DNA from: Lepidodermella squamata
Lineage: Eukaryota; Animalia; Gastrotricha
Reading direction: 5' to 3'
NCBI GenBank assembly: GCA_047495785.1
Contig: JBLDXI010000021.1
Span: 2,610,225-2,674,224, forward strand
Length of the DNA stretch: 64,000 nt
Of this stretch, positions 40,916-61,310 are shown one piece after another. The notes beneath the pieces were generated by a model. That model saw only the letters and a list, made by a program, of their open reading frames with translations. It was not told where the DNA came from and did no database searches. Position 1 is the stretch's first letter. Each line of letters opens with the position of its first letter. A program made the position numbers and the translations under genes.

Positions 40916-40957
40916 GGGTTAGGGTTAGGGTTAGGGTTAGGGTTAGGGTTAGGGTTA
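40916..40957 (+). repeat. Telomeric tract (GGGTTA)7, proximal boundary of the array
   Basis: Direct reading. Confidence 0.97.
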
Positions 40958-43014
40958 TTGGTAATAGTTTAATACAGACGAGCTGCAAACCGGGGCCTCT
41001 CGTTTTACCGAGAGTCAAACCGGGCCCTACCATTACTCCATCATAGGTATCCAAGATGAGCATCATTTTTATGTTTGTGATAATTCTTCATCACAAAAAT
41101 TATGTGTTCCTAACCACTCCGCGATAATACTGAGATCCGATAAAAAATTCCCGACAAATGGCTCAAAGGAACTCAGACAAAATTTGTATTCAAAGAATGA
41201 ATACAATTCAATCAGAAGAATGACCCAGGGGAGTCATTTTCTGTTTGATCTTATTTTACCATGACCCAGGGGAGTCAGGCAAATTATTTATTTTACCATG
41301 ACCCAGGGGAGTCAGGCAAATTATTAATATTTCACCATGACCCAAGGGAGTCAGGGAAATTACAAAGGATAGAATTAGAAATAAATAAATTGTAAACATT
41401 TCAACATAAGTCTACTGCCTTGGAACAGTTTCATAACTTTGAAAAAATTACTTCAAATTACATCAATATTCGTCAAACGTTGAAGCAAAAGTTATGAAGG
41501 GTTTTACACTAGTGCCCTCAAACTTACTATATGTTGAAAACAAAGTTTAACAGATAGTGCTGTTGAAGAGCGATTGATAATTTTACAGTCTTCGAGAAAG
41601 ACTTTTATAAGCTTCTTTGATTGAATGGCTGCGTAAATTATTTGTTCGCCAGATTTTGCCAATCGTCGTGCCAAGTCAAGTCACATGGATCTTATTCATG
41701 CGTTGTATTTAATTAGCGAGTCGTTCTTTATGAATGAAATAAAATTCCAAGCTCAAGTCACGTGCAAACTAAAGCACATAAAAAATTATTTCCAAGATAT
41801 TTCGATGATTTTGCGCTAAAGCCGACCAACGAGAAAAAAATTCCTATACAGAGTACTGCGCACAATAAGAAGTACTACGCGCGCATAATATTATAAGATA
41901 TACTTATAGCCCGCATTCTGTGTGAAAAAAATGAATGTACTGGACAAATGACCAACAAATATAAGTGCGCTTTTGTGGATGTTACCATGAAATCTTCTGC
42001 TTACCTGGTAGAGAACTGTCGAAAGTATCAGGAAATCGATAGAAAAGCATGTGCAACCGTGGGTTATTCACCGCTAGGCGACTTGAAAATGATCTGAAAT
42101 CGCAAAAACCTTGGAAAAATGCACCCACTGGTGTCTTGAGCGGCGTTTCTGCGAAAACCAAAATGGGTTCACCCACAGTTTTTCACATTCCCTAGCCGAG
42201 CACATGGATAGCTTATTAGGGAAGTAAGAAATAGCCAGTTAATATGGAGGACATCCACGGCTTTTCAGTATTTTCCCTCCCGGCTTGAAAATCGTGGAAA
42301 AATCGAAAATTGTATGTTTTTAGTCGCTCTTATCTCGAAAACACCCATGGTTGCACCATAGCTTTTTGTGGTCAAATAGGAGAAGGCACTAGGAGGAAGG
42401 TTTTAACAGGGAAAACAGCAAGAACCACCCCAACTTATCCAAGACTTTTTCGTCCTGATTAGCACTCACTACGTCACACCCAACACCTCGAAAATGCATG
42501 GCCTGGCGTCTTTTGGGGCATTGCTGCAAGAAAGAGCATGGGTTCAACCACAGTTTTTCACGTCCTTTAGTAGAGCACAAGAAGATCTTACTCAGGAAGT
42601 AAGAAATTGCCAGTAAATGCGGTGTTTATCCACGGGTTAAGAGTCTTTTCTCTCCACATCCGATTCAAGTCCGAATCGAAGAGAAAGTGAGGATTTTTCA
42701 TCTTTCATGGCACTTATCTTGAAAAAACCCGTGGCTGCACCATAAGTTTTTGTATTCAAACAGTAGAGGAGATTGAGAAGAAGGTTTCAAAAGAGAAAAC
42801 AGCACGAACCACGACAACTTATCCACGACTTTTTCGCCTTGATGGACAATCACATTTTAAGCTCAAAATCGAACTTCAAAACTGGGCTATTCACCTTACC
42901 TTACGCGGCAGAGCCCTTATTTCACCTGTAACAAGTTGAATGAAGCGCATACTTCTTATAAAATAGCAAATATGCGGGTGCTACCATGATTTGCCATGAT
43001 TTTCCATTCGGTCC
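40958..43014 (-). mobile_element. Non-coding telomere-attached segment C2 (diverged relative of element C)
   Basis: First ~85 nt after the telomere tract are homologous to the start of C; bounded by telomere tracts; internal 37-41-bp repeats x4 (41220-41360) and a diverged ~375-bp duplication (~42170-42860). Confidence 0.6.
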
Positions 43015-43069
43015 GGGTTAGGGTTAGGGTTAGGGTTAGGGTTAGGGTTAGGGTTAGGGTTAGGGTTAG
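43015..43069 (+). repeat. Telomeric tract (GGGTTA)9
   Basis: Direct reading. Confidence 0.97.
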
Positions 43070-44027
43070 TAGGGTTAGTACTATGGTCCTCCGGTTCAAT
43101 GTATTGCAAATTTTCAAGCAAAACTTTCCACCCCGTGACCAAGTTGTCACGGAGGTTCGTGCTGGTCATTGAGGCGCAGGCTTGACGCCACGCGTTGACG
43201 AATTCTTCACGCGGTTCGCCGAGGTTGATGCCGCGGGCCTTGCGGATGACCGTAACCGAGCTGCCTTGACTGCAGACGCTGTTGAAGGCGCGAGCGGTGT
43301 AGAGCGGTAGCGAGTCGGGGTCGCAGTAGAGGAACGCTTGCGACGCGTCGTCGTAGGCTAAGTGGGCGGCACCTGCGTGAGCCCAGCCGGAGCGGAGGCG
43401 AAGCGAGGTGACGGTGGCGGCGGCGAAACTGTCGCGTTCTGCAACGACTTTCGGGTCGACGAGCGAGTCTGTGGGAAAGAATTTGTTCATGCCATTAATA
43501 AAATTTCTTTCATGTGGCGTATAGCCGCCGCTGTTAACAGCAGTGCTAATGCGCGCCCGAATAATAAAATGATTAATAAATGATGCAAGCTTGGCCTGAT
43601 ATCGCTCGAGGATATCGTGACGGTGCTGTTGCTCGAGCCGTTGACGACGGTTAGAGGGCGGTGGTGGCGGCGGTGACGCGTTCCTTGGAGCACGATTGCT
43701 CGGAGCGGGCGGACGCTGCTCTCGCCATGAGCGGTCGCGATAGCGGTCTTCTCGGTCTTGAGGACGGTCTTCGCGGTAGTAATGGCGGTCGTCGCGGTAG
43801 CGCTGACGGTCTTCGTCACGGTGACGGTGTTGTTGTCGATGTTGATCGTCTTGTTCGCGGTAACGCGATTGAGACGGCGGCGGTGGTTGACGATGGCGAC
43901 CGGCGGTTGATGTCGAATTGTGGTAGACATAACGGAAGCCGCCAATGTAAGCGCGCTTCGCCGGATCGTTGTTGGCCGTGGTGAACCCGTTGTAATTATT
44001 TGCAACAAAGCGATTGTGATTTGACAT
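43070..44027 (-). CDS. Family A ORF1 N-terminal half (pLTR copy)
   Basis: MSNHNRFVANN... homologous to B ORF1 MSNRNRFVSNN...; runs into telomere repeats as poly(NP). Confidence 0.8.
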
Positions 44028-44049
44028 TTATCAAGATTTATTTATACTT

Positions 44050-44083
44050 TCAACTAACGCGTTTCAAATTTCATCAGAGTTGA
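44050..44083 (-). ncRNA. Minimal type I hammerhead ribozyme (family A)
   Basis: UCAACU-CUGAUGA-AAUUU-GAAA-CGCG-UU^AGUUGA: 6-bp stem I, intact core, palindromic stem III; cut 28 nt before ORF1 AUG. Confidence 0.85.
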
Positions 44084-45052
44084 GTGTGAAAACAGATAGA
44101 TTCGTCGTCGTATTTAACCTAGCGAAGCTGCGCCCACTCGGTCCAGGTGAGATCGTGTTAGGCGCAGCCGCTTAACGCAACAGCTGTACATTAATTAACA
44201 ATAATCTGTGTGTAACGAGGCGTTGACTAGGCGTGGCGCGGCAGAAGGCGAAAACAGGTGTGCGCCGAGGTGCTGTAATCCCTAATCCCTCGCAGGTGCT
44301 CGGGTGATCACGAGCGGATTAACAGAAGGGAGCGAGAGCGGATAATCATTAAGCAGTGATTAAGTCCTGATGACTACCGGCGTTGAGAGCTACTCGGAAG
44401 GAGGTTTGGCGGACGTAACAAATCGACCGCGAAGAAAAAATCCGGCGTGACAACGGGGCGCAAAAGTAGGCAATTTATCAAAAACTTGCAGAAGTGACAC
44501 AATTGCAGCCGAGGTGTGTTTCTAGATGTAAGAGACCACGGAGAGCTCAAAAATCGAGGTCCCAGACTCACACGAGCTGGCGTTTGGAAGTAAACATCAA
44601 AATACAAAAATATTTTCGGTTTTTTCCGGATTTCGTGAAAACTAAGTCGAAAATCAAAATTCGAAGATCGGAGCAAAAAACTACATCATATGACACATCC
44701 AAATATGCTAGTCATTAAAACGTGGTCATACTTTCATATTAGTGAGCTCGCAGTTTTTGCCGTTTTACGCGAAAACGGTGAGGATTGGCGATCAAACAAC
44801 AGTAACGTGACCCATATGTCTAGAACAGACCACGCGGAATCGATTGGAACTATTTCCCGGGAGAGTAGGTGTCACGGTTAACGAGATAATCGACTTTTAC
44901 GAAAATAAATTTTGGTGAAGTGAGCGGAAGAGCGCGTAAGAGCGCACATAAGTAATTTCAGTGACTATTCACACGTTTCGCAACATTAGAACATTATTAC
45001 AGATTAATTGAGCGAGAGAATTTTGAGGCGAAAAACTTTGAGCCAGAGCACG

Positions 45053-46858
45053 CTAACAGTCTTTAGTGCGGCAGAGCTGCTTGACCAGCGACGGGCCGAG
45101 GCGTGTGACGACGCGATGCCGGTGCCGTTTGGCGACGTCGAGTAGTGGCTGCAGACCGCGAACGAACTTGGTTTCGTGCTCCGGCCGCCAGTCACGATCG
45201 ACCGGTCGCGAGTCAGCACGGTGTCGTAGAAACGGCCAGTCGAGGCCGGCGCAGCCGTCGACAACGCTGCGGCAGATTGCGAAGACGTCCGCGTCGTGAT
45301 AGCCGTACTTGCTGGCGGAGGCGGCGAGACTGAACACGGCCGAGGCCAGGTCCTGTGTGTTGTTACAAATTCGAACAAAATTAAGTAAACGACCAGAAAT
45401 AGCTGCACGTAAGGTGGAAAGAGGGTGATTAGAATCTGCGTGCAATAAAGGCAGCGCATTCATAGGCTTAAAGTAAACCCCTGTTCGAATTGAACCGTCT
45501 TCAAACTTCTGCATTCGCACGTCGAGCACGTTAGCGCAGTCGTTGCTGATGTCGATTTCCAGTTTGATGCGAGGGTGCAGCGCGCTGTAGCCATTGCCCA
45601 GGTTGACGGCGGCTTCGTGGCTGGTAGCGACCGCGAAAATGTCGTCTCGGTAGCGTTTGAACAGTAGGAGGCCCTCGGAGCGGGCGACGAGGTCGCGTTC
45701 GAGAACGAAGAGAAAGGCGTCGGCGACGACGGGCGCGGTGTTCGACCCCATCGGGATGCCGTGCACTTGCCGATAACGAGCGCCTGCAAATAGAAAAATA
45801 TTGAATTTAAGCGTGATTTTTAATATTTCGACAACAAGATGGCGTTCTGCCTGAGACCCGATACTGTTCTCGCGCAGTAGTAGTTCGATAGCGGCGATGC
45901 CTTCGTCGATCGGGACGTTGGTGTAGAGATCGCTGACGTCGGCGGTGAAGAACGTAGCGTCGAGACCGCTTGTGTCGATTGACCGCACGGCTGAAAGCAG
46001 GTCGATTGTAGACATCGCACACGTCGTCATGAAGTAATTCAGCGGTTTACAGAAGGCGGCGGCGACCTTGTCTGCGGCTGCGAGCGCGGTACCTAGACAG
46101 TCGACGATCGGGCGAATCTTCGGTAGACCATCGACGTCGTTCGGTTTATGCATTTTCGGCAAGAAGTAGATGTACCGGTCACGCGTTGGCACGAGGTCGA
46201 GACCGCGGAGCAGCTTGCGTTGCGCCGCGGTACCTGAGGCGTTGATTCGCTCGACCAGAGTCTTCATTGCTTCCAGCCCGGCGGTTGACTCGTCTTCAGT
46301 GGCGTTGACGTAGTTGGCGGTTGACAGATGCTTCGTTGCCATTCGGTTGTAGTCTTCTTTCTTGAGATAGACCATGGCCGAGCCCTTATCCGACTTCTTA
46401 AAGACGCCGTTGTTGCGGAGCGCCTTGATTCGTCGCAGCTGCGGGTCGTCGTTGAGCGGGCCGATTGTGAGCGTTCGGGCAGGCTGAGCGTGACGGATGA
46501 CAACTTGGCCGTTGATGCCTACGATAGGCCCTACGAAGCGTTTCGAGAACGGTACCGCTGGGACCGAGACGTCGTAGCGGTGATCGGCTCGCGGTTGAAC
46601 GGTTGCACCTAGAAGATCTGACATAGATTTTAGTGAGGCAAATTTTTCTTTTTTAGTAAAATTTATAATTTTAAGGCCCCGCTCGAGTGCCTGTTTCTCG
46701 GCGGGCGCCAAACTCCCTGTCAGATCAATGACTGACGGCAGGGAACAGCGGTGAAGGCTGAAGGCGGTACCATTCTGGACAAGGCACGACATGCCCGTCA
46801 GCCCTAGCGACTTTAAAAAACGAGATCGCGGCTTTTCGATGCCTCCCTGCCTTGTCAC
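45053..46858 (-). CDS. PLE reverse transcriptase, family A, no GIY-YIG
   Basis: YFLPKMHK, IRPIV, FTADVSDLYTNVP, QVHGIPMGS, RYRDDIF, NVLDV, thumb YFKP..LHADSNHP; stop ~100 aa later. Confidence 0.95.
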   Translation of the reverse strand: MTRQGGIEKPRSRFLKSLGLTGMSCLVQNGTAFSLHRCSLPSVIDLTGSLAPAEKQALERGLKIINFTKKEKFASLKSMSDLLGATVQPRADHRYDVSVPAVPFSKRFVGPIVGINGQVVIRHAQPARTLTIGPLNDDPQLRRIKALRNNGVFKKSDKGSAMVYLKKEDYNRMATKHLSTANYVNATEDESTAGLEAMKTLVERINASGTAAQRKLLRGLDLVPTRDRYIYFLPKMHKPNDVDGLPKIRPIVDCLGTALAAADKVAAAFCKPLNYFMTTCAMSTIDLLSAVRSIDTSGLDATFFTADVSDLYTNVPIDEGIAAIELLLRENSIGSQAERHLVVEILKITLKFNIFLFAGARYRQVHGIPMGSNTAPVVADAFLFVLERDLVARSEGLLLFKRYRDDIFAVATSHEAAVNLGNGYSALHPRIKLEIDISNDCANVLDVRMQKFEDGSIRTGVYFKPMNALPLLHADSNHPLSTLRAAISGRLLNFVRICNNTQDLASAVFSLAASASKYGYHDADVFAICRSVVDGCAGLDWPFLRHRADSRPVDRDWRPEHETKFVRGLQPLLDVAKRHRHRVVTRLGPSLVKQLCRTKDC

Positions 46859-47750
46859 CGTGAACTGTGGCGATGTGTTCGCATAGGGCGTTGATCGAAC
46901 CGCGGTGAGGTTTGTGAAGACACTTGCTGCCGTCCACCATCTTCTTGCCGCAGTACCAGAAGTGTTCTAATTCGTTCCATTCGACGCCGATTTCCGGGTC
47001 TTCTTTCTTCGTCTTCTGCCACCATTCGCGCCGGTACTTGGCCGTGTTGACTCCGCGTTGCTGAGCGAACGTTTTCGGCGAGACTTGTTGCGCGTTGGTG
47101 TTCGAACGTTTCGACTGACCGGGCGCGTTGTTGTAAACTTTCGATGCGGACGCGGCGTTTTCACCGTACATCTTCTTCGCGGGTACAGCCTTGGGCTTCG
47201 CTTTCGGAGCGACGGTCGAGATCGCTTGTTGTTTCGCGGTGGGCGGACGAGCTGTAGGCGATGGCTCCTTCTCTTCTTCTTGACGCTTCCGCTTCGACGA
47301 CACTGAAGGCGGAGGCGCGACCGGGTGGGTCACGCGTTGAGAGTTCGGCGTGAGCCCGAAGAAATCCGACGCGACCATGATAACATTTTCTCTAGGAAAA
47401 AGTGGGTTATTATTAATTAAAGCTTCGGCCGCTGTAGCGGCAGCCAGAAGCGCTGTGTCGCTCGCAGTATCGATGACAGGTGACGAGATCTTCCTCGGTG
47501 CGGCGGGCTGAACCGATTGTTCAGAGGCGCGTGTTGTGGTCGGAGTGACCGAATCGGTGTTGTTGTTGTTCGATTCGACGACGACGACGGGTGAGGCGTT
47601 ACGTGCGCTGGCCACGACTGGCGGTGAGGCGGTAGGCGTCCGCGTTGTCGGAGACTTGGCGACTGGCGCGGCGATAGGTTCGCTGTTCTTGTTGACGATG
47701 GGTGAGGCGACGGCGGCGGCTGCTGGAGGCGCGACCTTCGATGTGACGTC
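46725..47750 (-). CDS. Family A ORF1 C-terminal half (5'-truncated) with Zn finger
   Basis: S/T/P/A-rich linker, DTASDTALLAAA, REWW, CX9CX14HX4H shared with B ORF1; frame open up to the telomere junction. Confidence 0.8.
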   Translation of the reverse strand, partial: DVTSKVAPPAAAAVASPIVNKNSEPIAAPVAKSPTTRTPTASPPVVASARNASPVVVVESNNNNTDSVTPTTTRASEQSVQPAAPRKISSPVIDTASDTALLAAATAAEALINNNPLFPRENVIMVASDFFGLTPNSQRVTHPVAPPPSVSSKRKRQEEEKEPSPTARPPTAKQQAISTVAPKAKPKAVPAKKMYGENAASASKVYNNAPGQSKRSNTNAQQVSPKTFAQQRGVNTAKYRREWWQKTKKEDPEIGVEWNELEHFWYCGKKMVDGSKCLHKPHRGSINALCEHIATVHGDKAGRHRKAAISFFKVARADGHVVPCPEWYRLQPSPLFPAVSH

Positions 47751-47751
47751 G

Positions 47752-47842
47752 AGGGTTAGGGTTAGGGTTAGGGTTAGGGTTAGGGTTAGGGTTAGGGTTA
47801 GGGTTAGGGTTAGGGTTGGGGTTAGGGTTAGGGTTAGGGTTA
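47752..47842 (+). repeat. Telomeric tract ~15 units (one TTGGGG variant)
   Basis: Direct reading. Confidence 0.97.
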
Positions 47843-48024
47843 TTGTAATGATTTAATACAGACGAGCTGTAAACCGGGGATTCTCCGAAGAGAATGACAC
47901 CGGGCCCTACCACTACTCCCTCGGGAGCCGATCCAGAGAACGTGGTCTCAGTGATCAGAACAAACAATGGAACGATCGGAAACCGCGCGAGATTAATCCG
48001 ATAATATTCAATATCAGGACCACG
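47843..48024 (-). mobile_element. Short 5'-truncated copy of element C
   Basis: Matches 48104-48285; flanked by telomere tracts. Confidence 0.85.
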
Positions 48025-48103
48025 AGGGTTAGGGTTAGGGTTAGGGTTAGGGTTAGGGTTAGGGTTAGGGTTAGGGTTAGGGTTAGGGTTGGGGTTAGGG
48101 TTA
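48025..48103 (+). repeat. Telomeric tract ~13 units (one TTGGGG variant)
   Basis: Direct reading. Confidence 0.97.
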
Positions 48104-48460
48104 TTGTAATGATTTAATACAGACGAGCTGTAAACCGGGGATTCTCCGAAGAGAATGACACCGGGCCCTACCACTACTCCCTCGGGAGCCGATCCAGAGA
48201 ACGTGGTCTCAGTGATCAGAACAAACAATGGAACGATCGGAAACCGCGCGAGATTAATCCGATAATATTCAATATCAGGACCACGAGGGGTTCGCCGATA
48301 TAATTAGATAGTCACGGGGGACTGCTGTATAAACTCGCAAACATTAATTAAACAAGTTCATTACCGAAACTCCAAAGAACGTTGTCGTTTGTAACTGCTT
48401 AAACCAGTTAAACCAGCAATTGTAACTGCATAAACCATGAATGAAATGGAACCGTAAACT

Positions 48461-48529
48461 AAGAGGTAGCCTTTATCAGACCGGTTTCGCTACTTGGCTA
48501 GGGTAGCTCATCAGTGACTTTTACCTCTT
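48461..48529 (-). ncRNA. Type I hammerhead ribozyme with full stem II and extended stem I (element C)
   Basis: AAGAGGUA-AAA-GUCA-CUGAUGA-GCUAC-CCUAGCCAA-GUAGC-GAAA-CCGG-UC^UGAU-AAAGGC-UACCUCUU. Confidence 0.92.
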
Positions 48530-48816
48530 GCAAAAGAATGATTTTATTCTGCTAGCTTGAGCATTTAAATAGGCAGCAGGCCACGTTTATCCAAGCAAGG
48601 TCAGGCGCCACATGCTTGATTTTTCGTGTGTGTAAGATCACGTGAATGCGTGATTTCATGCGTGAAAAACTTTATTTTATTATCGTGCAGCATTTTAATT
48701 TCCCCATAATATAATTTATTAGTGACTTGTTGAAAATGTCGAATGTATTTATTATCGTAATCATTTTATCTCATATAAACAGTTCCATGTCATAAATTTA
48801 AAATCAGACGGTCATC

Positions 48817-51026
48817 GAGCAACATGTGATGAAATTTGAAACCTCAAAAAATTAATTTTAAACTTAGAAATAGGTCATTTGGCATCGCTCTGGAACCTTT
48901 TCGGTCAACGTAACTGGCAACGTGACTTGATATTCACGATCAGCGGTCCTTGTAGTACTAATTCCGTGAAATATTCATGACTTGGTTCAGGATTGAGCTA
49001 CTTGTGATGAAATTTGAGACCTCAAAAAATTAATTTTAAACTTCGAAATAGGTCATTTGGCATCGCTCTGGAACCTTTTCGGTCAACGCAACTGGCAAAG
49101 TGACTTGATATTCACGATCAGCGGTCCTTGTAATACTAATTTCGTGAAATATTCATGACTTGGTTCAGGATTGAGCAACTTGTGATGAAATTTGAAACCT
49201 CAAAAAATTAATTTTAAACTTCGAAATAGGTCATTTGGCATCGCTCTGGAACCTTTTCGGTCAACGCAACTGGCAAAGTGACTTGATATTCACGATCAGC
49301 GGTCCTTGTAGTACTAATTCCGTGAGATATTCATGACTTGGTTCAGGATTGAGCAACTTGTGATGAGATTTGAGACCTCAAAAAATTAATTTTAAACTTC
49401 GAAATAGGTCATTTGGCATCGCTCTGGAACCTTTTCGGTCAACGCAACTGGCAAAGTGACTTGATATTCACGATCAGCGGTCCTTGTAGTACTAATTCCG
49501 TGAAATATTCATGACTTGGTTCAGGATTGAGCAACTTGTGATGAAATTTGAAACCTCAAAAAATTAATTTTAAACTTCGAAATAGGTCATTTGGCATCGC
49601 TCTGGAACCTTTTCGGTCAACGCAACTGGCAAAGTGACTTGATATTCACGATCAGCGGTCCTTGTAGTACTAATTCCGTGAGATATTCATGACTTGGTTC
49701 AGGATTGAGCAACTTGTGATGAGATTTGAGACCTCAAAAAATTAATTTTAAACTTCGAAATAGGTCATTTGGCATCGCTCTGGAACCTTTTCGGTCAACG
49801 CAACTGGCAAAGTGACTTGATATTCACGATCAGCGGTCCTTGTAGTACTAATTCCGTGAAATATTCATGACTTGGTTCAGGATTGAGCAACTTGTGATGA
49901 AATTTGAAACCTCAAAAAATTAATTTTAAACTTAGAAATAGGTCATTTGGCATCGCTCTGGAACCTTTTCGGTCAACGCAACTGGCAAAGTGACTTGATA
50001 TTCACGATCAGCGGTCCTTGTAGTACTAATTCCGTGAAATATTCATGACTTGGTTCAGGATTGAGCAACTTGTGATGAAATTTGAGACCTCAAAAAATTA
50101 ATTTTAAACTTCGAAATAGGTCATTTGGCATCGCTCTGGAACCTTTTCGGTCAACGCAACTGGCAAAGTGACTTGATATTCACGATCAGCGGTCCTTGTA
50201 GTACTAATTCCGTGAAATATTCATGACTTGGTTCAGGATTGAGCAACTTGTGATGAAATTTGAAACCTCAAAAAATTAATTTTAAACTTCGAAATAGGTC
50301 ATTTGGCATCGCTCTGGAACCTTTTCGGTCAACGCAACTGGCAAAGTGACTTGATATTCACGATCAGCGGTCCTTGTAGTACTAATTCCGTGAGATATTC
50401 ATGACTTGGTTCAGGATTGAGCAACTTGTGATGAGATTTGAGACCTCAAAAAATTAATTTTAAACTTCGAAATAGGTCATTTGGCATCGCTCTGGAACCT
50501 TTTCGGTCAACGCAACTGGCAAAGTGACTTGATATTCACGATCAGCGGTCCTTGTAGTACTAATTCCGTGAAATATTCATGACTTGGTTCAGGATTGAGC
50601 AACTTGTGATGAAATTTGAAACCTCAAAAAATTAATTTTAAACTTAGAAATAGGTCATTTGGCATCGCTCTGGAACCTTTTCGGTCAACGCAACTGGCAA
50701 AGTGACTTGATATTCACGATCAGCGGTCCTTGTAGTACTAATTCCGTGAAATATTCATGACTTGGTTCAGGATTGAGCAACTTGTGATGAAATTTGAGAC
50801 CTCAAAAAATTAATTTTAAACTTCGAAATAGGTCATTTGGCATCGCTCTGGAACCTTTTCGGTCAACGCAACTGGCAAAGTGACTTGATATTCACGATCA
50901 GCGGTCCTTGTAGTACTAATTCCGTGAAATATTCATGACTTGGTTCAGGATTGAGCAACTTGTGATGAAATTTGAAACCTCAAAAAATTAATTTGCAACT
51001 TCGAAATAGGTCTTTTGGTTTCGCTC
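48817..51026. repeat. 178-bp tandem repeat, ~12.4 near-identical copies, inside element C
   Basis: ggtc[a/t]tttgg at 48873, 49051, 49229 ... 51009. Confidence 0.97.
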
Positions 51027-51327
51027 AAGAGCACCTCGTTCCCCTTCACAGCCCCTTTGGTTTCTTGGTGATACATTGTACCGAACGGGCAAGATCAGTT
51101 AGGGTTATTGTAATGATTTAATACAGACGAGCTGTAAACCGGGGATTCTCCGAAGAGAATGACACCGGGCCCTACCACTACTCCCTCGGGAGCCGATCCA
51201 GAGAACGTGGTCTCAGTGATCAGAACAAACAATGGAACGATCGGAAACCGCGCGAGATTAATCCGATAATATTCAATATCAGGACCACGAGGGGTTCGCC
51301 GATATAATTAGATAGTCACGGGGGACT

Positions 51328-51489
51328 GGGTTAGGGTTAGGGTTAGGGTTAGGGTTAGGGTTAGGGTTAGGGTTAGGGTTAGGGTTAGGGTTAGGGTTAG
51401 GGTTAGGGTTAGGGTTAGGGTTAGGGTTAGGGTTAGGGTTAGGGTTAGGGTTAGGGTTAGGGTTAGGGTTAGGGTTAGGGTTAGGGTTA
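51328..51489 (+). repeat. Telomeric tract (GGGTTA)27
   Basis: Direct reading. Confidence 0.98.
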
Positions 51490-52460
51490 ATTAGTAAGCT
51501 GCGGTCCGCCTGTATTTTGTTTTGCGCAAGGTGATAAGTAAAAGCCTGCCAGCCCTTCGTAACGTTGGTGAGCAAGTCAGGGCTGCGCATGGCGCGTTTC
51601 ATTTCGTTGCAGGCGCATTGAAATTGTTCGTAGATCGCCGGCCAGTAGATGTTGCTCGACTTGCGCAGGACTCGTAGCACGCTGTTGCTGCTCGCGACAG
51701 TGTTGAAGACCCGCGACGTTTGGGCCGCTCTGTCCGACGGATGGCAGTAGTTTGCTGCTTGGCGTGCATCGGTGAACGCACTTTCGAGAGCTTGCTCGTG
51801 TCCTGTCATGGATTTATGACGTATCTCGGAAACAACATTGTAAAAAAGCAAATCAACGATGCCCTGAGTGCTAGCTTCGAACCGATGCTCGCGCGGGAAA
51901 AACTTCTCGAGCACTGGCCGGAGTGCCTTCTCGTGAGCGGTGGTGGGTCTCTCGTTTTGAGGTTTGGCGTAGTCTTCACTGAAGTTGGCTGTGGCGAGCT
52001 TGGCTAAAATGAAGAAATGATGAATAAAATTGTTGAGTTTCTCGCGGAAGCGATCGAGGAGATCTTGTCGATGTTCCCTCGCTCGACGTTGCCCTTCTGC
52101 TGCTGCCTTAGAAGGTAGCTGCCTGTTGTCCGTTGAGTCTTGCGGTCGCTTCGTACCATCCGCGTGCCGACGGTCTGACTGAGCGTTCGAACCAGACCCG
52201 TGCGAGCGACTGGAGCGGCCGTGCGTAGCACCCTCGTGCGAACGGTAAGATCGAGTGTTCGAACTGGACGCTGCTGCGGAGACTGTCTGTTTCGAGCGGC
52301 TTTGATGACGATCGCGCCGTTCTTGTTGATAGGGCGGATTGTGACGACTCGAGTTGTAATAGACGTAGCGGAAGCGGCCAAAGATGGCCCGTCCCGGGCG
52401 GTCGTTGTTAATTTCTGTAAACCCGTTGTTATTAGAAACAAAACGGTTACGGTTAGACAT
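51490..52460 (-). CDS. Family B ORF1 N-terminal part (pLTR copy)
   Basis: Nearly identical to the first ~325 aa of 54910-57405; reads into telomere as poly(NP). Confidence 0.8.
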
Positions 52461-52469
52461 AATGAGATT

Positions 52470-52508
52470 TATTGGTAGACCGGTTTCACTATTTCTTCAG
52501 TACCAATA
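52470..52508 (-). ncRNA. Minimal type I hammerhead ribozyme (family B, copy 1)
   Basis: UAUUGGUA-CUGAAGA-AAUAGU-GAAA-CCGG-UC^UACCAAUA; 8-bp stem I; cut 17 nt before ORF1 AUG. Confidence 0.9.
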
Positions 52509-53237
52509 TCATACTTCTGATAGAATTATAACGAGTGACATTATTGTGACAGCGCTATGATAACACCGTACCAGGTGCGTGTGCCTCGGACTATGTTAGG
52601 CGCAGCGGATTAGGATTACAAGGTGTTGTTTCGCGCACACGTGTTACTAAGTTCAAGTTAACTACGGCAGGTGTGCGTCTAGGTGTGCGCACTATATCGG
52701 ATTAGCGCACAGATGTTGTGGCCACTACTTGTTAATCGGTGATTCTAGCCAAATGGGTAACAAGGTGTGCTACTAGGCTGGCGAGGCCTTGATGACGAGC
52801 TAACGTGACATCTGTGCTGTTGAGAGACGACAATTACAATGATGAAGATGACCAATAGAAGATTGACAGCTGACGCAAGGCGTTATTGCCGGCGACATCA
52901 AGGTATTGAAAGCAATAAAAGTCATAAAACAGGATATGCCGATTCTAAGGTCGTTATCGACTTTGGATCTCGCTGCGGGTTACTGGTTGATACCAGGATG
53001 GCTTGGCCGCCGTGGTCGTGCGCGACTATGACTCGCTGACGTCCAGAACATTAGACCTCGCTGCGGGTTACTGGCCGATACCGCGTTGAACAGGCTATAA
53101 AACATGAATGGAGAAACATATAATACTGCGTAATGGTGGTAATTAATCTAATGAATTAATTAAGAATAATTAATAAACGGTCGGTAGCTTTGTTGCTACT
53201 CTTGACATCGTCGCTGGCTACTGGTCGATTGGTTCGG

Positions 53238-55064
53238 CTAGCAGTCTTTCGTTCGGCAGAGTTGCTTGACAACGCTTGGACCGAGTCGGGTGACGAGACG
53301 AATGCGTCGCCGGCGTGCGATGTCGTACAGTGGCTGTAGTGGCCGAACGAACTTCGTTTCGACCGGTGGTCGCCAGTCTTGTTGGTAGCGAAAGTTGTCG
53401 ACACGATTGCGTAGGAACGGCCAGTCTTGACCTTCGCAACTTGTGATGACGTCGTGGGCGAGCGCAAAAACATCTGCGTCGACGTAGCCGTACTTGGACG
53501 CGGAACTGGCGAGGCTAAAAATGGCAGAACACAAGTCTTCTGTATTATTGCAAATTCTTAAAAAGTTTAAAATGCGCCCTGTGACTGCGGCCCGGAGAGT
53601 CGATTCTGGGTGATTGGAGTCAGCGTGTAAGAGAGGCAACGAGTTCATGGGCTTGAAGTAAACGCCGGTTCTGATGGAGCCATCGGGGTACTTGCTCAGG
53701 CGGACGTCGAGAACATTCGCACGCTCGGAGCTGATCTCGACTTCGAGCTTTATACGTGGATGTAGTGCGCCGTATTCGTTGCCTAGCGTGACTGCGGCCT
53801 CTTGAGTGGTGCAGATTGCGAAGACGTCGTCTCGATACCGTTTGAACAACATCACGTCGGTTTGGCGTTCGACCAGATCGCGCTCGAGCACATAGAGGAA
53901 CGCGTCCGCTACGACTGGGGCACTGTTGGAGCCCATCGGAATTCCGTGCACCTGACGATACTGAATGCCTGAAAAATAGAAAATGTTTGAATTAAGTGTT
54001 ATTTCGAGCATTGCGACGACGAGGTCGCGTTCGGGTGCGGTTCCGATTGCGTTCTCGTCCAACATGGTCTTGATCGCTGCGATTCCTTCTCCAATCGGTA
54101 CGTTGGTGTACAAGTCGCTCACGTCTGCGGTAAAGAACGTGACGTCGCACCCGCTTGAGTCGATTGCGCGAACAGCGTGTAGTAGGTCGATGGTAGACGA
54201 GGCACAGGTAGTCATGAACCGGTTAAGCGGTTTGCAGTAAGCTGCGGCGACCTTGTCTGCGGCGGCGAGCGCTGTGCCCAAACAGTCGACAATCGGCCGA
54301 ATTTTCGGTAGACCATCTACGTCAAATGCCTTGTGCATTTTTGGTAAAAAATAAATATGACGATCGCGGGTTGGCTCGAGATCGAGCCCGCGTAACAGCT
54401 TGCGTTGTGCGGCTGTACCGGTTGCCATAACGCGGTCGACGAGAGTCTTCATTGCTTCGAGGCCTCGCTTCTCTTCTGATTCTTCGGCGTGCACATAGTT
54501 CGCTGTAGTGAGATGTTTGAGCGCCATTTTCGAGTAGTTCGCCTTTGACATGTAGACCATCGCTGCACCTTTGTCAGATTTCTTGAATACGCCGTCTTTG
54601 CGGAGGGCGCGTAATCGTCGTAGCTGTGGGTCGTCGACGATGGGACCGAGCCGTACTGTGCGAGCTGGCTGTGCGTGGCGGATAACGACTTGTCCGTGGA
54701 TCCCGATAATCGGACCAACGAAGCGCTTTGAGAACGCTACAGAGGGAACCTTGACGTCGAGGCCGTGGTCGGGACGAGGGACGACGGTTGCGCCAAGGAG
54801 ATCTGAAATGACATTAACACAGGCAATTTTATCTTTTTTCGTGAAATTAATGATTTTAAGGCCACGCTCGAGTGCCTGTTTCTCGGCTGGCTGGAGAGTT
54901 CCCGTCAGGTCAACGACGGACGGTAGAGAACAGCGATGCAGCGTCCCGTACGCTCCGTTTTGGACTAGGGATGGGATGGCCCTGAGCCCGAGCGATCCCG
55001 CGAAACCGCGACGCGATGTCTGCGTGTCTGTCTCCTTTTTCGTGCTTCTCGCGGATGTGTGTGA
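53238..55064 (-). CDS. PLE reverse transcriptase, family B copy 1 (frame open from 55064; first ATG 54560)
   Basis: Same motifs as A (YRDD); 168 stop-free codons upstream of the ATG, most homologous to the A N-terminus (LVQNG..LHRCSLPSV.DLTG..EKQALERGLKIINFTKK). Confidence 0.93.
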   Translation of the reverse strand, partial: SHTSARSTKKETDTQTSRRGFAGSLGLRAIPSLVQNGAYGTLHRCSLPSVVDLTGTLQPAEKQALERGLKIINFTKKDKIACVNVISDLLGATVVPRPDHGLDVKVPSVAFSKRFVGPIIGIHGQVVIRHAQPARTVRLGPIVDDPQLRRLRALRKDGVFKKSDKGAAMVYMSKANYSKMALKHLTTANYVHAEESEEKRGLEAMKTLVDRVMATGTAAQRKLLRGLDLEPTRDRHIYFLPKMHKAFDVDGLPKIRPIVDCLGTALAAADKVAAAYCKPLNRFMTTCASSTIDLLHAVRAIDSSGCDVTFFTADVSDLYTNVPIGEGIAAIKTMLDENAIGTAPERDLVVAMLEITLNSNIFYFSGIQYRQVHGIPMGSNSAPVVADAFLYVLERDLVERQTDVMLFKRYRDDVFAICTTQEAAVTLGNEYGALHPRIKLEVEISSERANVLDVRLSKYPDGSIRTGVYFKPMNSLPLLHADSNHPESTLRAAVTGRILNFLRICNNTEDLCSAIFSLASSASKYGYVDADVFALAHDVITSCEGQDWPFLRNRVDNFRYQQDWRPPVETKFVRPLQPLYDIARRRRIRLVTRLGPSVVKQLCRTKDC

Positions 55065-57405
55065 TCAGACCATTGATTGAGCAGCTCTTGCCGACGTGGC
55101 CGCATCGTTTGCCGCTCGGTAGCTTGAAAGCGCACGACCACTTGCCGTTGTGAAACTCGACGAGTATCGACGGATCGCGTATCTTTTCTTTCTTCCACCA
55201 TTCGCGGGTGAACTCTGCTTTGCTCAAGTTCTTCTGTATGGCGTAGTCTTGCTTTGATAGCGTGGTCGTCGTATCACCCTGCTCTTGACGGACCGACTGA
55301 GCGTTCGAACCGTGCATCGGTGGGTTGTGCGCAGGCGGTCGCGATGCCGGTGCCAGGCGTTTGAGACACGTTCCGGGTTGCCCGTACATTTGTTGCGCCG
55401 AGATCGCTTTGACGACGGCGGGCTTCTTGGACGGCGCCGGAAGTTCTGTTGGTGACTTGTCTTTCGGGCTGGTGGCACGAGCTCGCTTGGTGGGCACCGA
55501 GGCGTTTGGCGCACCTGGTCGAGGAGCGTTCTGCGAGACCGCGTTGATCGCTTCACCGAAGAACGAGGCGACCGAGCTGACATCTGAAATAGAATTGCAA
55601 TTATTAAAACGAGATTCGACATTGGCTGCAGCTGCTGCTAGCGCGGTGTCGCTGGCACTGTCGATCGGTGAAGCGTCCTTGCTCGGAGTCTGAGGCAGAG
55701 GCGCGGACGTGGGCGTTAACTGGGCTGCTGTCGATTTGTCGGCAGTGACCGTTTGTGGAGTAGCCGGGCGGGCTACATTGATAGTCGTTGAGTGGTCGGC
55801 GGTCGCCGCTGAATCGCGGCTGCCACCGTTCTTGGTAACCAAGTTGCTAGCTTCAGAAGTTGACCGAGCGGTAGTCGACGCTGAACCGCGACTGTCAACG
55901 CTCTTTGAGACCAAGTTGCTAGCTTCAGAAGTTGACCGAGCGGTAGTCGACGCTGAACCGCGACTGTCATCGCTCTTTGAGACCGAGTTGCTAGCTTCAG
56001 AAGTTGACCGAGCGGTAGTCGACGCTGAACCGCGACTGTCATCGCTCTTTGAGACCAAGTTGCTAGCTTCAGAAGTTGACCGTGCGGGAATCGAGGCCAA
56101 ATCGCGACCGAGACCTCTCTTCGGTACCAGTGCGTTGATCTGAGCGGTTGAACGTGCGGAAATCCAGGTCGAATCGCGTTCTTCTGTGGTGAGCAAGCCC
56201 CAATCACCCGGGCTCGGATGGCCAGTCTGAGCGGTTGAACCGGGAGCCGCCTTGGGTGTCGGTGGTAACGCTTGACGAGCTGTTTCTGATTGACCTGTCG
56301 GCGTAACCGGATTGACGGCCGGGTCGCTTACGACCATCGGCGACGAAGACTGAATGGTGTCGTGCGCTTCAACTGTTATGTTGACAGGTGCTTCCCTTGG
56401 GGAGGCATGGACCTGAGAAAGAGAGTTAGGGTTAATTAGTAAGCTGCGGTCCGCCTGTATTTTGTTTTGCGCAAGGTGATAAGTAAAAGCCTGCCAGCCC
56501 TTCGTAACGTTGGTGAGCAAGTCAGGGCTGCGCATGGCGCGTTTCATTTCGTTGCAGGCGCATTGAAATTGTTCGTAGATCGCCGGCCAGTAGATGTTGC
56601 TCGACTTGCGCAGGACTCGTAGCACGCTGTTGCTGCTCGCGACAGTGTTGAAGACCCGCGACGTTTGGGCCGCTCTGTCCGACGGATGGCAGTAGTTTGC
56701 TGCTTGGCGTGCATCGGTGAACGCACTTTCGAGAGCTTGCTCGTGTCCTGTCATGGATTTATGACGTATCTCGGAAACAACATTGTAAAAAAGCAAATCA
56801 ACGATGCCCTGAGTGCTAGCTTCGAACCGATGCTCGCGCGGGAAGAACTTCTCGAGCACTGGCCGGAGTGCCTTCTCGTGAGCGGTGGTGGGTCTCTCGT
56901 TTTGAGGTTTGGCGTAGTCTTCACTGAAGTTGGCTGTGGCGAGCTTGGCTAAAATGAAGAAATGATGAATAAAATTGTTGAGTTTCTCGCGGAAGCGATC
57001 GAGGAGATCTTGTCGATGTTCCCTCGCTCGACGTTGCCCTTCTGCTGCTGCCTTAGAAGGTAGCTGCCCGTTGTCCGTTGAGTCTTGCGGTCGCTTCGTA
57101 CCATCCGCGTGCCGACGGTCTGACTGAGCGTTCGAACCAGACCCGTGCGAGCGACTGGAGCGGCCGTGCGTAGCACCCTCGTGCGAACGGTAAGATCGAG
57201 TGTTCGAACTGGACGCTGCTGCGGAGACTGTCTGTTTCGAGCGGCTTTGATGACGATCGCGCCGTTCTTGTTGATAGGGCGGATTGTGACGACTCGAGTT
57301 GTAATAGACGTAGCGGAAGCGGCCAAAGATGGCCCGTCCCGGGCGGTCGTTGTTAATTTCTGTAAACCCGTTGTTATTAGAAACAAAACGGTTACGGTTA
57401 GACAT
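54910..57405 (-). CDS. Family B ORF1, complete (831 aa)
   Basis: Conserved N-domain, low-complexity linker with ~4 x 24-aa (72-nt) repeats, C-terminal CX9CX14HX4H finger. Confidence 0.9.
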   Translation of the reverse strand: MSNRNRFVSNNNGFTEINNDRPGRAIFGRFRYVYYNSSRHNPPYQQERRDRHQSRSKQTVSAAASSSNTRSYRSHEGATHGRSSRSHGSGSNAQSDRRHADGTKRPQDSTDNGQLPSKAAAEGQRRAREHRQDLLDRFREKLNNFIHHFFILAKLATANFSEDYAKPQNERPTTAHEKALRPVLEKFFPREHRFEASTQGIVDLLFYNVVSEIRHKSMTGHEQALESAFTDARQAANYCHPSDRAAQTSRVFNTVASSNSVLRVLRKSSNIYWPAIYEQFQCACNEMKRAMRSPDLLTNVTKGWQAFTYHLAQNKIQADRSLLINPNSLSQVHASPREAPVNITVEAHDTIQSSSPMVVSDPAVNPVTPTGQSETARQALPPTPKAAPGSTAQTGHPSPGDWGLLTTEERDSTWISARSTAQINALVPKRGLGRDLASIPARSTSEASNLVSKSDDSRGSASTTARSTSEASNSVSKSDDSRGSASTTARSTSEASNLVSKSVDSRGSASTTARSTSEASNLVTKNGGSRDSAATADHSTTINVARPATPQTVTADKSTAAQLTPTSAPLPQTPSKDASPIDSASDTALAAAAANVESRFNNCNSISDVSSVASFFGEAINAVSQNAPRPGAPNASVPTKRARATSPKDKSPTELPAPSKKPAVVKAISAQQMYGQPGTCLKRLAPASRPPAHNPPMHGSNAQSVRQEQGDTTTTLSKQDYAIQKNLSKAEFTREWWKKEKIRDPSILVEFHNGKWSCAFKLPSGKRCGHVGKSCSINGLITHIREKHEKGDRHADIASRFRGIARAQGHPIPSPKRSVRDAASLFSTVRR

Positions 57406-57414
57406 AATGAGATT

Positions 57415-57453
57415 TATTGGTAGACCGGTTTCACTATTTCTTCAGTACCAATA
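57415..57453 (-). ncRNA. Minimal type I hammerhead ribozyme (family B, copy 2)
   Basis: Same sequence as 52470-52508. Confidence 0.9.
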
Positions 57454-58182
57454 TCATACTTCTGATAGAATTATAACGAGTGACATTATTGTGACAGCGC
57501 TATGATAACACCGTACCAGGTGCGTGTGCCTCGGACTATGTTAGGCGCAGCGGATTAGGATTACAAGGTGTTGTTTCGCGCACACGTGTTACTAAGTTCA
57601 AGTTAACTACGGCAGGTGTGCGTCTAGGTGTGCGCACTATATCGGATTAGCGCACAGATGTTGTGGCCACTACTTGTTGATCGGTGATTCTAGCCAAATG
57701 GGTAACAAGGTGTGCTACTAGGCTGGCGAGGCCTTGATGACGAGCTAACGTGACATCTGTGCTGTTGAGAGACGACAATTACAATGATGAAGATGACCAA
57801 TAGAAGATTGACAGCTGACGCAAGGCGTTATTGCCGGCGACATCAAGGTATTGAAAGCAATAAAAGTCATAAAACAGGATATGCCGATTCTAAGGTCGTT
57901 ATCGACTTTGGATCTCGCTGCGGGTTACTGGTTGATACCAGGATGGCTTGGCCGCCGTGGTCGTGCGCGACTATGACTCGCTGACGTCCAGAACATTAGA
58001 CCTCGCTGCGGGTTACTGGCCGATACCGCGTTGAACAGGCTATAAAACATGAATGGAGAAACATATAATACTGCGTAATGGTGGTAATTAATCTAATGAA
58101 TTAATTAAGAATAATTAATAAACGGTCGGTAGCTTTGTTGCTACTCTTGACATCGTCGCTGGCTACTGGTCGATTGGTTCGG

Positions 58183-60009
58183 CTAGCAGTCTTTCGTTCG
58201 GCAGAGTTGCTTGACAACGCTTGGACCGAGTCGGGTGACGAGACGAATGCGTCGCCGGCGTGCGATGTCGTACAGTGGCTGTAGTGGCCGAACGAACTTC
58301 GTTTCGACCGGTGGTCGCCAGTCTTGTTGGTAGCGAAAGTTGTCGACACGATTGCGTAGGAACGGCCAGTCTTGACCTTCGCAACTTGTGATGACGTCGT
58401 GGGCGAGCGCAAAAACATCTGCGTCGACGTAGCCGTACTTGGACGCGGAACTGGCGAGGCTAAAAATGGCAGAACACAAGTCTTCTGTATTATTGCAAAT
58501 TCTTAAAAAGTTTAAAATGCGCCCTGTGACTGCGGCCCGGAGAGTCGATTCTGGGTGATTGGAGTCAGCGTGTAAGAGAGGCAACGAGTTCATGGGCTTG
58601 AAGTAAACGCCGGTTCTGATGGAGCCATCGGGGTACTTGCTCAGGCGGACGTCGAGAACATTCGCACGCTCGGAGCTGATCTCGACTTCGAGCTTTATAC
58701 GTGGATGTAGTGCGCCGTATTCGTTGCCTAGCGTGACTGCGGCCTCTTGAGTGGTGCAGATTGCGAAGACGTCGTCTCGATACCGTTTGAACAACATCAC
58801 GTCGGTTTGGCGTTCGACCAGATCGCGCTCGAGCACATAGAGGAACGCGTCCGCTACGACTGGGGCACTGTTGGAGCCCATCGGAATTCCGTGCACCTGA
58901 CGATACTGAATGCCTGAAAAATAGAAAATGTTTGAATTAAGTGTTATTTCGAGCATTGCGACGACGAGGTCGCGTTCGGGTGCGGTTCCGATTGCGTTCT
59001 CGTCCAACATGGTCTTGATCGCTGCGATTCCTTCTCCAATCGGTACGTTGGTGTACAAGTCGCTCACGTCTGCGGTAAAGAACGTGACGTCGCACCCGCT
59101 TGAGTCGATTGCGCGAACAGCGTGTAGTAGGTCGATGGTAGACGAGGCACAGGTAGTCATGAACCGGTTAAGCGGTTTGCAGTAAGCTGCGGCGACCTTG
59201 TCTGCGGCGGCGAGCGCTGTGCCCAAACAGTCGACAATCGGCCGAATTTTCGGTAGACCATCTACGTCAAATGCCTTGTGCATTTTTGGTAAAAAATAAA
59301 TATGACGATCGCGGGTTGGCTCGAGATCGAGCCCGCGTAACAGCTTGCGTTGTGCGGCTGTACCGGTTGCCATAACGCGGTCGACGAGAGTCTTCATTGC
59401 TTCGAGGCCTCGCTTCTCTTCTGATTCTTCGGCGTGCACATAGTTCGCTGTAGTGAGATGTTTGAGCGCCATTTTCGAGTAGTTCGCCTTTGACATGTAG
59501 ACCATCGCTGCACCTTTGTCAGATTTCTTGAATACGCCGTCTTTGCGGAGGGCGCGTAATCGTCGTAGCTGTGGGTCGTCGACGATGGGACCGAGCCGTA
59601 CTGTGCGAGCTGGCTGTGCGTGGCGGATAACGACTTGTCCGTGGATCCCGATAATCGGACCAACGAAGCGCTTTGAGAACGCTACAGAGGGAACCTTGAC
59701 GTCGAGGCCGTGGTCGGGACGAGGGACGACGGTTGCGCCAAGGAGATCTGAAATGACATTAACACAGGCAATTTTATCTTTTTTCGTGAAATTAATGATT
59801 TTAAGGCCACGCTCGAGTGCCTGTTTCTCGGCTGGCTGGAGAGTTCCCGTCAGGTCAACGACGGACGGTAGAGAACAGCGATGCAGCGTCCCGTACGCTC
59901 CGTTTTGGACTAGGGATGGGATGGCCCTGAGCCCGAGCGATCCCGCGAAACCGCGACGCGATGTCTGCGTGTCTGTCTCCTTTTTCGTGCTTCTCGCGGA
60001 TGTGTGTGA
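58183..60009 (-). CDS. PLE reverse transcriptase, family B copy 2
   Basis: Protein from the first ATG is identical to copy 1 in the ORF track. Confidence 0.93.
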   Translation of the reverse strand, partial: SHTSARSTKKETDTQTSRRGFAGSLGLRAIPSLVQNGAYGTLHRCSLPSVVDLTGTLQPAEKQALERGLKIINFTKKDKIACVNVISDLLGATVVPRPDHGLDVKVPSVAFSKRFVGPIIGIHGQVVIRHAQPARTVRLGPIVDDPQLRRLRALRKDGVFKKSDKGAAMVYMSKANYSKMALKHLTTANYVHAEESEEKRGLEAMKTLVDRVMATGTAAQRKLLRGLDLEPTRDRHIYFLPKMHKAFDVDGLPKIRPIVDCLGTALAAADKVAAAYCKPLNRFMTTCASSTIDLLHAVRAIDSSGCDVTFFTADVSDLYTNVPIGEGIAAIKTMLDENAIGTAPERDLVVAMLEITLNSNIFYFSGIQYRQVHGIPMGSNSAPVVADAFLYVLERDLVERQTDVMLFKRYRDDVFAICTTQEAAVTLGNEYGALHPRIKLEVEISSERANVLDVRLSKYPDGSIRTGVYFKPMNSLPLLHADSNHPESTLRAAVTGRILNFLRICNNTEDLCSAIFSLASSASKYGYVDADVFALAHDVITSCEGQDWPFLRNRVDNFRYQQDWRPPVETKFVRPLQPLYDIARRRRIRLVTRLGPSVVKQLCRTKDC

Positions 60010-60179
60010 TCAGACCATTGATTGAGCAGCTCTTGCCGACGTGGCCGCATCGTTTGCCGCTCGGTAGCTTGAAAGCGCACGACCACTTGCCGTTGTGAAA
60101 CTCGACGAGTATCGACGGATCGCGTATCTTTTCTTTCTTCCACCATTCGCGGGTGAACTCTGCTTTGCTCAAGTTCTTC

Positions 60180-61061: not shown

Positions 61062-61130
61062 TAACCTAACCCAACCCTAACCCTAACCCTAACCCTAACC
61101 CTAACCCTAACCCTAACCCTAACCCTAACC

Positions 61131-61171
<41 letters not shown>

Positions 61172-61269: not shown

Positions 61270-61310
<41 letters not shown>

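Follow-up and report, generated by a model that had tools for sequence, protein, structure and literature searches.

A telomere-flanked, non-coding element with a hammerhead motif in the gastrotrich Lepidodermella squamata, a candidate passenger of endonuclease-free Penelope-like elements

The window analysed is a stretch of 64,000 nucleotides from Lepidodermella squamata (GenBank assembly GCA_047495785.1, contig JBLDXI010000021.1, positions 2,610,225 to 2,674,224 of the forward strand), and all coordinates given here are positions within it. Unique host sequence ends at 40915 and is followed by an array of elements and telomere tracts that includes the subject of this work, a non-coding element named C (48104-51327), whose RNA sense is the minus strand. 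Read along the plus strand, the array begins with a (GGGTTA)7 tract directly after the host DNA (40916-40957), on which the first insertion, a second non-coding element named C2 (40958-43014, minus strand), is found. A (GGGTTA)9 tract (43015-43069) separates C2 from element A (43070-47751, minus strand), which amounts to just under one unit. Another telomere tract (47752-47842) leads to the C fragment (47843-48024, minus strand), a 182-nt 5'-truncated copy of C with telomere tract on either side; the right-hand one, GGGTTA x13 (48025-48103), is the tract onto which C is joined. C is capped by a (GGGTTA)27 tract (51328-51489), which also carries element B (51490-60179, minus strand), 1.75 units of 4945 nt. 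These tracts all read GGGTTA on the plus strand.

C is made of one full unit of 3004 nt (48104-51107), delimited by the 3004-nt spacing of the repeated sequence and by the identity of the restart, and of 220 nt of a second unit (51108-51327), identical to 48104-48323 at 220 of 220 positions. The whole copy corresponds to 1.07 units. The restart is truncated and telomere-capped 137 nt before a second hammerhead ribozyme would begin, so that the copy has a single hammerhead, and for this reason it is probably a dead end made from a master at another site. The 10 bases to the left of both unit starts are GTTAGGGTTA on the plus strand, or UAACCCUAAC in the RNA sense. The terminal copy of this motif (48094-48103) is merged with the telomere tract and is the putative priming site, while the internal one (51098-51107), identical to it, lies at the unit boundary. 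The start that adjoins the telomere tract reads GGGTTA/TTG, or in longer form GGGTTA/TTGTAATG (the slash marks the junction). The longest open reading frame (ORF) within C codes for 49 amino acids; an apparent ORF of 209 amino acids is read-through of telomere repeats. When every ORF of A, of B and of six relatives from outside the window was searched against C, C2 and X (a further non-coding stretch to the right of B), no protein-level similarity emerged (tblastn, all E>0.06). Comparison of the same three elements with A, B and the relatives at the nucleotide level (blastn) returned only the motif, a module common to C and C2, and a 16-nt match to a hammerhead core. An earlier note on this DNA had described C as a 3004-nt unit without a genuine ORF, which starts at a telomere tract exactly at its internal motif, runs about 220 nt into a second unit, is capped by telomere repeats in the same layout as the autonomous elements and has both a complete hammerhead and a short truncated copy. 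All these structural statements are confirmed.

A feature absent from that description is a tandem array of 178-nt monomers (48817-51026, with no strand assigned; 12.4 copies, 97% matches) that occupies 2210 of the 3004 nt of the unit (74%). The array has a higher-order pattern in which the monomers of the sets 3/5/9, 4/6/10, 7/11 and 8/12 are identical (178/178), which indicates a very recent expansion. No hammerhead was found in the monomers on either strand with one core mismatch allowed. Note that each monomer carries on the plus strand, antisense to C, the 16-mer TGATGAAATTTGAAAC, which is identical to positions 44062-44077 of the hammerhead core of A. It is preceded by G where the hammerhead core requires C3 and has an expectation of about 0.002-0.008. 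This 16-mer may be the relic of an inverted hammerhead repeat, or a chance match.

The hammerhead of C (48529..48461, minus strand) is of type I, with canonical helices I and II and a minimal palindromic helix III, ACCGGU. Its segments follow the order AAGAGGUA, AAAG, UCA, CUGAUGA, GCUAC-loop-GUAGC, GAAA, C-CG-G, U, C, cleavage site, UGA, UAAAGGC and UACCUCUU. Helix I is formed by UCA/UGA (3 bp) and AAGAGGUA/UACCUCUU (8 bp), and helix II by the 5 bp of GCUAC/GUAGC closed by a 9-nt loop. The core and the three helices that define a type I hammerhead are all present, with every conserved core position intact: CUGAUGA at 48514-48508, GAAA at 48488-48485, the pair A48485/U48480 (A15.1-U16.1) and C17 at 48479. 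Cleavage is predicted between 48479 and 48478, 375 nt upstream of the motif. A descriptor that demands, besides the core, closure of helix II, U16.1/H17 and 4 bp or more in helix I identified four sites in the 64 kb (block-shuffled expectation 0.115). All are on the minus strand and they are found in A (44050-44083), twice in B (the minimal hammerheads at 52470-52508 and 57415-57453) and in C. The helix III/cleavage segment GAAACCGGUC is common to C, B and two elements from outside the window (L001 and L132), while at this place A has ACGCGU/U and three other outside elements have ACUAGU. Helix I differs in sequence among A, B, C and nine outside elements, yet it is always complementary, which is to say that it covaries. 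The assignment is based on core and helices and is made without an Rfam call: a search with 141 nt gave only a 12-bit alignment to Hammerhead_HH9 (RF02275, gathering score 52), in which the core is perfect and the helix III loop is deleted. The shortfall in score is due to this missing loop. A metagenome scan for hammerheads of the B type gave at least 120 loci; among the matches listed, 99 were scored, none with a helix I of 5 bp or more, and these are attributed to chance and left out of the comparisons. Some bear 'human-gut-metagenome' in their names, and none was taken to be human.

The junctions of the elements with the telomere tracts follow fixed registers. The element sequence follows directly on ...GGGTTA in C, its restart, the C fragment, C2 and B, and the motif UAACCCUAACU is common to C and B. 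Six tracts were inspected, namely those that follow the host DNA (40916), C2 (43015), A (47752), the C fragment (48025), C (51328) and an inverted piece of B (61349, minus strand). All six start in the register GGGTTA, irrespective of the sequence before them, as would be expected if telomerase added them de novo to the 3' end of a complementary DNA (cDNA) and always began at one position of its template. A, B and C share the same layout: telomere tract, element in antisense orientation on the plus strand, 5' truncation and new telomere tract. C has the insertion architecture of a Penelope-like element (PLE) without an endonuclease, with tracts on both sides, a fixed orientation, a 3' junction at a reverse-complement telomeric stretch and a variable 5' truncation. 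Variant repeats (TTGGGG, TTGGG) are also found within a few repeats of the junctions of the C fragment, C and X, at differing offsets (47816-47821, 48089-48094, 61310-61315 and 61066-61075).

The relatives of C within the array resemble it to different extents. The C fragment is identical to 48104-48285 over its whole length (182/182) and its break lies at an AGGG(G)TT microhomology; the tracts on its two sides differ in length and in the position of the TTGGGG variant. C2 had been regarded as a diverged relative of C, which applies to one part of it. The module next to the telomere, on the RNA 3' side (48104-48190, minus strand, in C), is common to both elements, with 78% identity over 82 nt of its ~85 nt, and blastn detects nothing beyond it. 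The remaining ~1970 nt of C2 (2057 nt in total) are unrelated to C and no hammerhead was found in C2, even with one core mismatch allowed. The module retains a hairpin built with different stems, AUUCUC/GAGAAU in C and CUCUCG/CGAGAG in C2. RNAalifold on the two modules keeps this hairpin, with two pairs changed on both sides. In both elements the UAGGG of the module is able to pair with the CCCUA of the motif. C and C2 are thus alike only over the ~85 nt that adjoin the motif, in the way families of short interspersed nuclear elements (SINEs) share a tail, which we count in favour of the interpretation given below. Since C2, the C fragment and C have different left flanks and truncation points, the array also provides evidence against duplication as a single block. 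The body of C2 has in addition a 37-nt repeat present three times (41251-41362) and a 165-nt pair 375 nt apart.

Elements A and B are the autonomous members of the array. The reverse transcriptase (RT) ORFs of B (53238-54560 and 58183-59505, minus strand) and of A (45053-46858, minus strand) match Pfam RVT_1. The nearest relatives of these RTs, 45-62% identical, have no GIY-YIG domain (PF01541), while distant ones (28-32%) have it; A and B are therefore endonuclease-free PLEs. ORF1 of B (57405..54910, minus strand, 831 amino acids) spans the internal motif at 56425-56434, which is read through as L-I-N-P-N-S. The terminal copy of ORF1 in B is open into the telomere tract, and likewise the amino-terminal part of ORF1 in A (44027..43070, minus strand). 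Cleavage is predicted 17 nt upstream of the ORF1 start codon in B (52461-52478) and 28 nt upstream in A (44028-44056), so that a processed RNA would begin almost at the ORF.

Nine contigs from Logan, ENA and JGI assemblies (L001, L004-L008 and L132-L134) code for related RTs, 35-62% identical to those of A and B. A minimal hammerhead with palindromic helix III is found just upstream of ORF1 in all nine. All of them also carry a telomere-complement stretch in the sense strand of ORF1, eight as AACCCTAA(C) and L134 only as CCTAACCCTA, and in each case ORF1 reads through it (positions L001:3797, L004:1870, L005:77/89, L006:358, L007:3425, L008:4132/4144, L132:2063, L133:1426 and L134:46/4245). 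The motif AACCCTAAC is conserved inside ORF1 of this RT-encoding family (B and the nine contigs) down to 35% RT identity, and it is coded AAC-CCT-AAC (N-P-N) in B and in the five outside contigs whose frame could be determined. The use of the same codons at RT identities as low as 35% points to selection on the nucleotide sequence. The motif lies downstream of the cleavage site, at ~985 nt from it in both A and B and at 800-970 nt in those outside contigs that have the two features in order.

The position of the motif inside ORF1, which reads through it, implies that it is intrinsic to the autonomous family rather than leftover telomere. It follows that cDNA synthesis in this family begins at the internal motif and that genomic copies are circular permutations of an RNA running from hammerhead to hammerhead, with a complete ORF1 only in copies longer than one unit. 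Such permutations call for a template that is circular or concatemeric, or for precise end-to-end template jumping. Four of the contigs (L134, L006, L005 and L007) have exact terminal overlaps of 55, 99, 30 and 30 nt, respectively, so that on assembly they close into circles or tandems of about 4.2-5.0 kb. Together with B, at 1.75 units, they indicate that more-than-unit copies are the rule. On these comparisons of sequence, the internal motif and the restart of C are the normal signature of the autonomous family and not an oddity.

C is on balance probably one copy of a retroelement that lacks both coding capacity and autonomy and exploits the same telomere priming as endonuclease-free PLEs. 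This interpretation builds on the anatomy of C, its junction registers, its lack of coding capacity, its hammerhead motif and an internal motif that the autonomous elements conserve as a family; from these we infer that C is transcribed and cleaved, that its RNA is circular and which RT copies it. In the pathway envisaged, the minus strand would be transcribed and the hammerhead would cut the RNA to unit length, the 2-bp palindromic helix III predicting action as a dimer. Ligation of the RNA ends might next produce a circle; alternatively, the template might be a concatemer left uncut. The G-rich 3' overhang of an uncapped telomere would pair with UAACCCUAAC and be extended by a PLE RT acting in trans, most likely a B-like one. 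Because the motif is internal, this RT would run for more than one unit round the template. Synthesis would stop at a random point and telomerase would extend the 3' end of the cDNA, always in the register GGGTTA. A B-like RT could plausibly mobilize C in trans, and B-like elements are the best candidates for this partnership because UAACCCUAACU and GAAACCGGUC are common to C and B. We speculate that the RNAs of C and B could pair with each other if hammerheads act as palindrome dimers. A broader proposal, which we hold as tentative and rather doubtful, is that a telomere-bound lineage of PLE RTs, sister to telomerase RT, would routinely copy separate non-coding RNAs (C, C2 and perhaps X) that carry the telomerase-template-like UAACCCUAAC, by way of circular, hammerhead-processed templates.

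Several observations weigh against the interpretation of C as a telomere-primed passenger. All evidence on C elements comes from this one 10-kb array, and the C fragment and C, adjacent and 100% identical, might be local duplicates one of the other. In a SINE-like comparison of partners, C and B share only UAACCCUAACU and the hammerhead segment GAAACCGGUC. More generally, C has only the 10-nt motif and the hammerhead in common with A and B, which does not pinpoint the partner RT, and neither A nor B contains the ~85-nt module that C and C2 have in common. A metagenome scan with this module gave 0 hits. Satellite-like sequence makes up 74% of C and, for C taken alone, the internal motif might be a 10-nt telomere tract that separates two successive insertions. 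Over 24 kb (40000-64000), neither the gathering score nor a threshold of E<=10 produced any Rfam match, and thermodynamic folding of the hammerhead region by minimum free energy (MFE) does not favour the hammerhead (z = -0.39). MFE folding is uninformative here; hammerhead cores are not MFE structures. The MFE of the 237-nt 3' region (z = 0.20) and the co-folding of C with C, C with B and B with B were likewise uninformative.

Four other explanations of the locus were considered. C, C2 and X could be the 5'-truncated 3' parts of longer, possibly coding, Terminon-like elements, the motif of C being a minimal telomere tract between insertions of 2995 nt and 220 nt. Most telomeric PLE copies are indeed 5'-truncated (PMC6431247), truncation without unit closure is plain in both C2 (2057 nt) and X (885 nt), and the closure of C depends on a single junction. 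That junction of 10 nt matches, however, the ORF-embedded motif of B in both length and sequence, while real tracts in this array are 42-285 nt long and begin with GGGTTA, not GTTA. Coding sequence flanks the motif on both sides in the autonomous family, whereas C has 3 kb without any. We judge this explanation unlikely. The explanation that C is a one-off chimeric cDNA, made by a PLE RT that started on a short parasite RNA or one derived from a pseudo-long terminal repeat and switched to a transcript of the 178-nt satellite, with the copies seen here being local duplicates, appears quite improbable. It would account for the homogeneous 178-nt array, some monomers of which are 100% identical, in 74% of C, for the opposite-orientation 16-nt match of the monomer to the hammerhead core of A (E about 0.002-0.008) and for the adjacency and identity of the C fragment and C. 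Against it, the restart returns precisely to motif and module after the array, and in C2 the module is attached to an unrelated body, at another and older place in the array.

Recombination, break-induced replication and telomere healing could also have shuffled a subtelomeric satellite without any RNA intermediate, the hammerhead and the motif being relics. Tandem repeats among short telomere tracts are typical of subtelomeres, and the inverted telomere and the head-to-head junction to the right indicate that rearrangement or misassembly occurs here. Against such shuffling, four C-family starts fall at exactly the same base in one orientation, truncation points vary and caps keep a fixed register, and the hammerhead core is intact at every conserved position; it is given an equally low probability. 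That the layout is an artefact of assembling a repeat-rich chromosome end is very improbable. The inverted B sequence at 61350-63983, 100% identical to 53702-56335 and joined via an inverted tract, fits a chimeric join; the C region, in contrast, is internally consistent, in that its junctions to left and right are unique and its tracts differ in length and in the variants they hold.

The likeness of C to known systems is closest in its insertion structure. Endonuclease-deficient PLEs, namely Athena and the Terminons of bdelloid rotifers and Coprina of fungi, protists and plants, form head-to-tail arrays at chromosome ends with short telomere tracts in between (PMC8557442, PMC6431247, PMC13159263, PMC4209133). 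C is like them in its 3' junction at a reverse-complement telomeric stretch, 5' truncation, telomerase caps, type I hammerhead with palindromic helix III and terminal redundancy, and unlike them in that it encodes no RT or other protein. In Athena/Terminon elements the telomere-complement stretch is described as lying immediately downstream of the hammerhead (PMC6431247); in C it is 375 nt away, and A, B and their relatives have it at a distance of 0.8-1 kb, inside ORF1. The two-ORF organization of A and B is Athena-like (PMC13159263) and is the only such trait seen in them; the label "Athena-type" used in the earlier note is not supported here. In Coprina, direct repeats at the termini have been described for one element (PMC13159263). 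The model of a circular RNA and more-than-unit copies for PLEs is a hypothesis of 2014, and the same source treats action of such hammerheads as dimers through their short palindromic helix III (PMC4209133).

The label "retrozyme" given to C in the earlier note is not retained. Metazoan non-LTR retrozymes (LTR, long terminal repeat) are tandem monomers of 150-450 nt, every one of which has its own type I hammerhead (Cervera & de la Pena 2020, PMC7229834; Li et al. 2026 preprint). C resembles them in being non-coding and AT-rich, in its canonical type I hammerhead with a weak palindromic helix III, for which dimer action is predicted, and in the proposed copying from circular RNA by PLE RTs. 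Retrozymes are dispersed or in arrays and have no telomere motif, whereas C has a 3004-nt unit, about ten times too long, with one hammerhead, a 178-nt array free of hammerheads and a telomere-priming motif. C is not a classical retrozyme. As to the remark in the earlier note that its author knew of no description of this combination, the mobilization of non-coding hammerhead elements by PLEs/Terminons is already a published hypothesis (PMC7229834, PMC7761336, bioRxiv 10.64898/2026.07.22.740005), while no telomere-primed version of it was found. The literature search gave no description of a non-coding, telomere-primed passenger of endonuclease-free PLEs, and an earlier description in the primary Athena/Terminon papers is possible. 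The non-autonomous Chlamys PLEs such as MRC1 (PMC8557442) are also non-coding partners, with pseudo-LTRs and multicopy head-to-tail insertions. Unlike C, which is telomere-bound, their 3' end resembles that of the autonomous partner and they insert inside chromosomes by means of an endonuclease.

A functional analogue of C, in its dependence on the RT of another element at telomeres, is HeT-A of Drosophila, which is related to long interspersed nuclear elements, encodes Gag, has neither a ribozyme nor telomere-repeat priming and lives in a host without telomerase. HeT-A, as opposed to TART/TAHRE, has no RT of its own, uses one supplied in trans and is telomere-specific, being found head-to-tail at chromosome ends (reviewed in PMC5537684). 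Telomerase RNA shares with C a non-coding nature and a CCCUAA-type motif for pairing with the G-overhang, copying being by an RT of the lineage of telomerase RT (TERT) and PLEs; it differs in that the motif of C would be an annealing site from which thousands of nt are copied once, and not a reiterated template. We take UAACCCUAAC to correspond to 10 of the 11 nt of the vertebrate telomerase RNA template. The telomerase-RNA family models of Rfam had no match in 40000-64000 at E<=10.

PLE RTs are the closest relatives of telomerase RT, and endonuclease-free members prime on telomeric overhangs. This relationship and the conserved, ORF-embedded priming motif give the finding its main weight. If C is a dedicated non-coding RNA copied from a telomere-complementary motif, such RTs can use a separate template RNA, which is the step needed to go from a retroelement to telomerase. 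On the broader and rather doubtful proposal given above, chromosome ends would offer a living case of an RT that works with a template RNA in trans, a stage between a retroelement that copies itself and the telomerase ribonucleoprotein, and beside a telomerase that does the capping. The idea of retrozymes and PLEs as parasite and host, so far a hypothesis for dispersed elements, would then reach chromosome ends. The priming motif embedded in ORF1 and the circularly permuted copies also make the model of circular RNA and more-than-unit copies directly testable.

The right end of the array departs from the order described above. At 60179/60180 the 5'-truncated end of B meets X (60180-61064, plus strand, 885 nt, repeat-rich and non-coding) head to head. 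X is followed by an inverted tract, (CCTAAC)47 (61065-61349), and by the inverted piece of B (61350-63983). This arrangement reflects a fusion of two telomeres or else a chimeric join made in assembly. X begins right at the inverted telomere tract as GGTTA/ATTACCAGACGG and holds tandem repeats of 79 nt (4.4 copies) and 33 nt (five copies). No hammerhead was found in X, which is possibly a further non-coding passenger. The window is animal, non-human DNA. On the host side, an exon of CtBP (10531-11163) has an identity of 73% with octopus, of 70% with Biomphalaria and of 65% with human, and ORFs with Sushi domains are found near it. The closest organism found via CtBP (95% at the amino acid level) has DNA ~70-74% identical in coding sequence and loses synteny at ~25.5 kb of the window, and was uninformative on this chromosome end. 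Internal tandem repeats are common to all elements of the array; in B, ORF1 holds a 72-nt (24 amino acids) tandem repeat in 4.3 copies at 55802-56108, with an inverted copy at 61577-61883.

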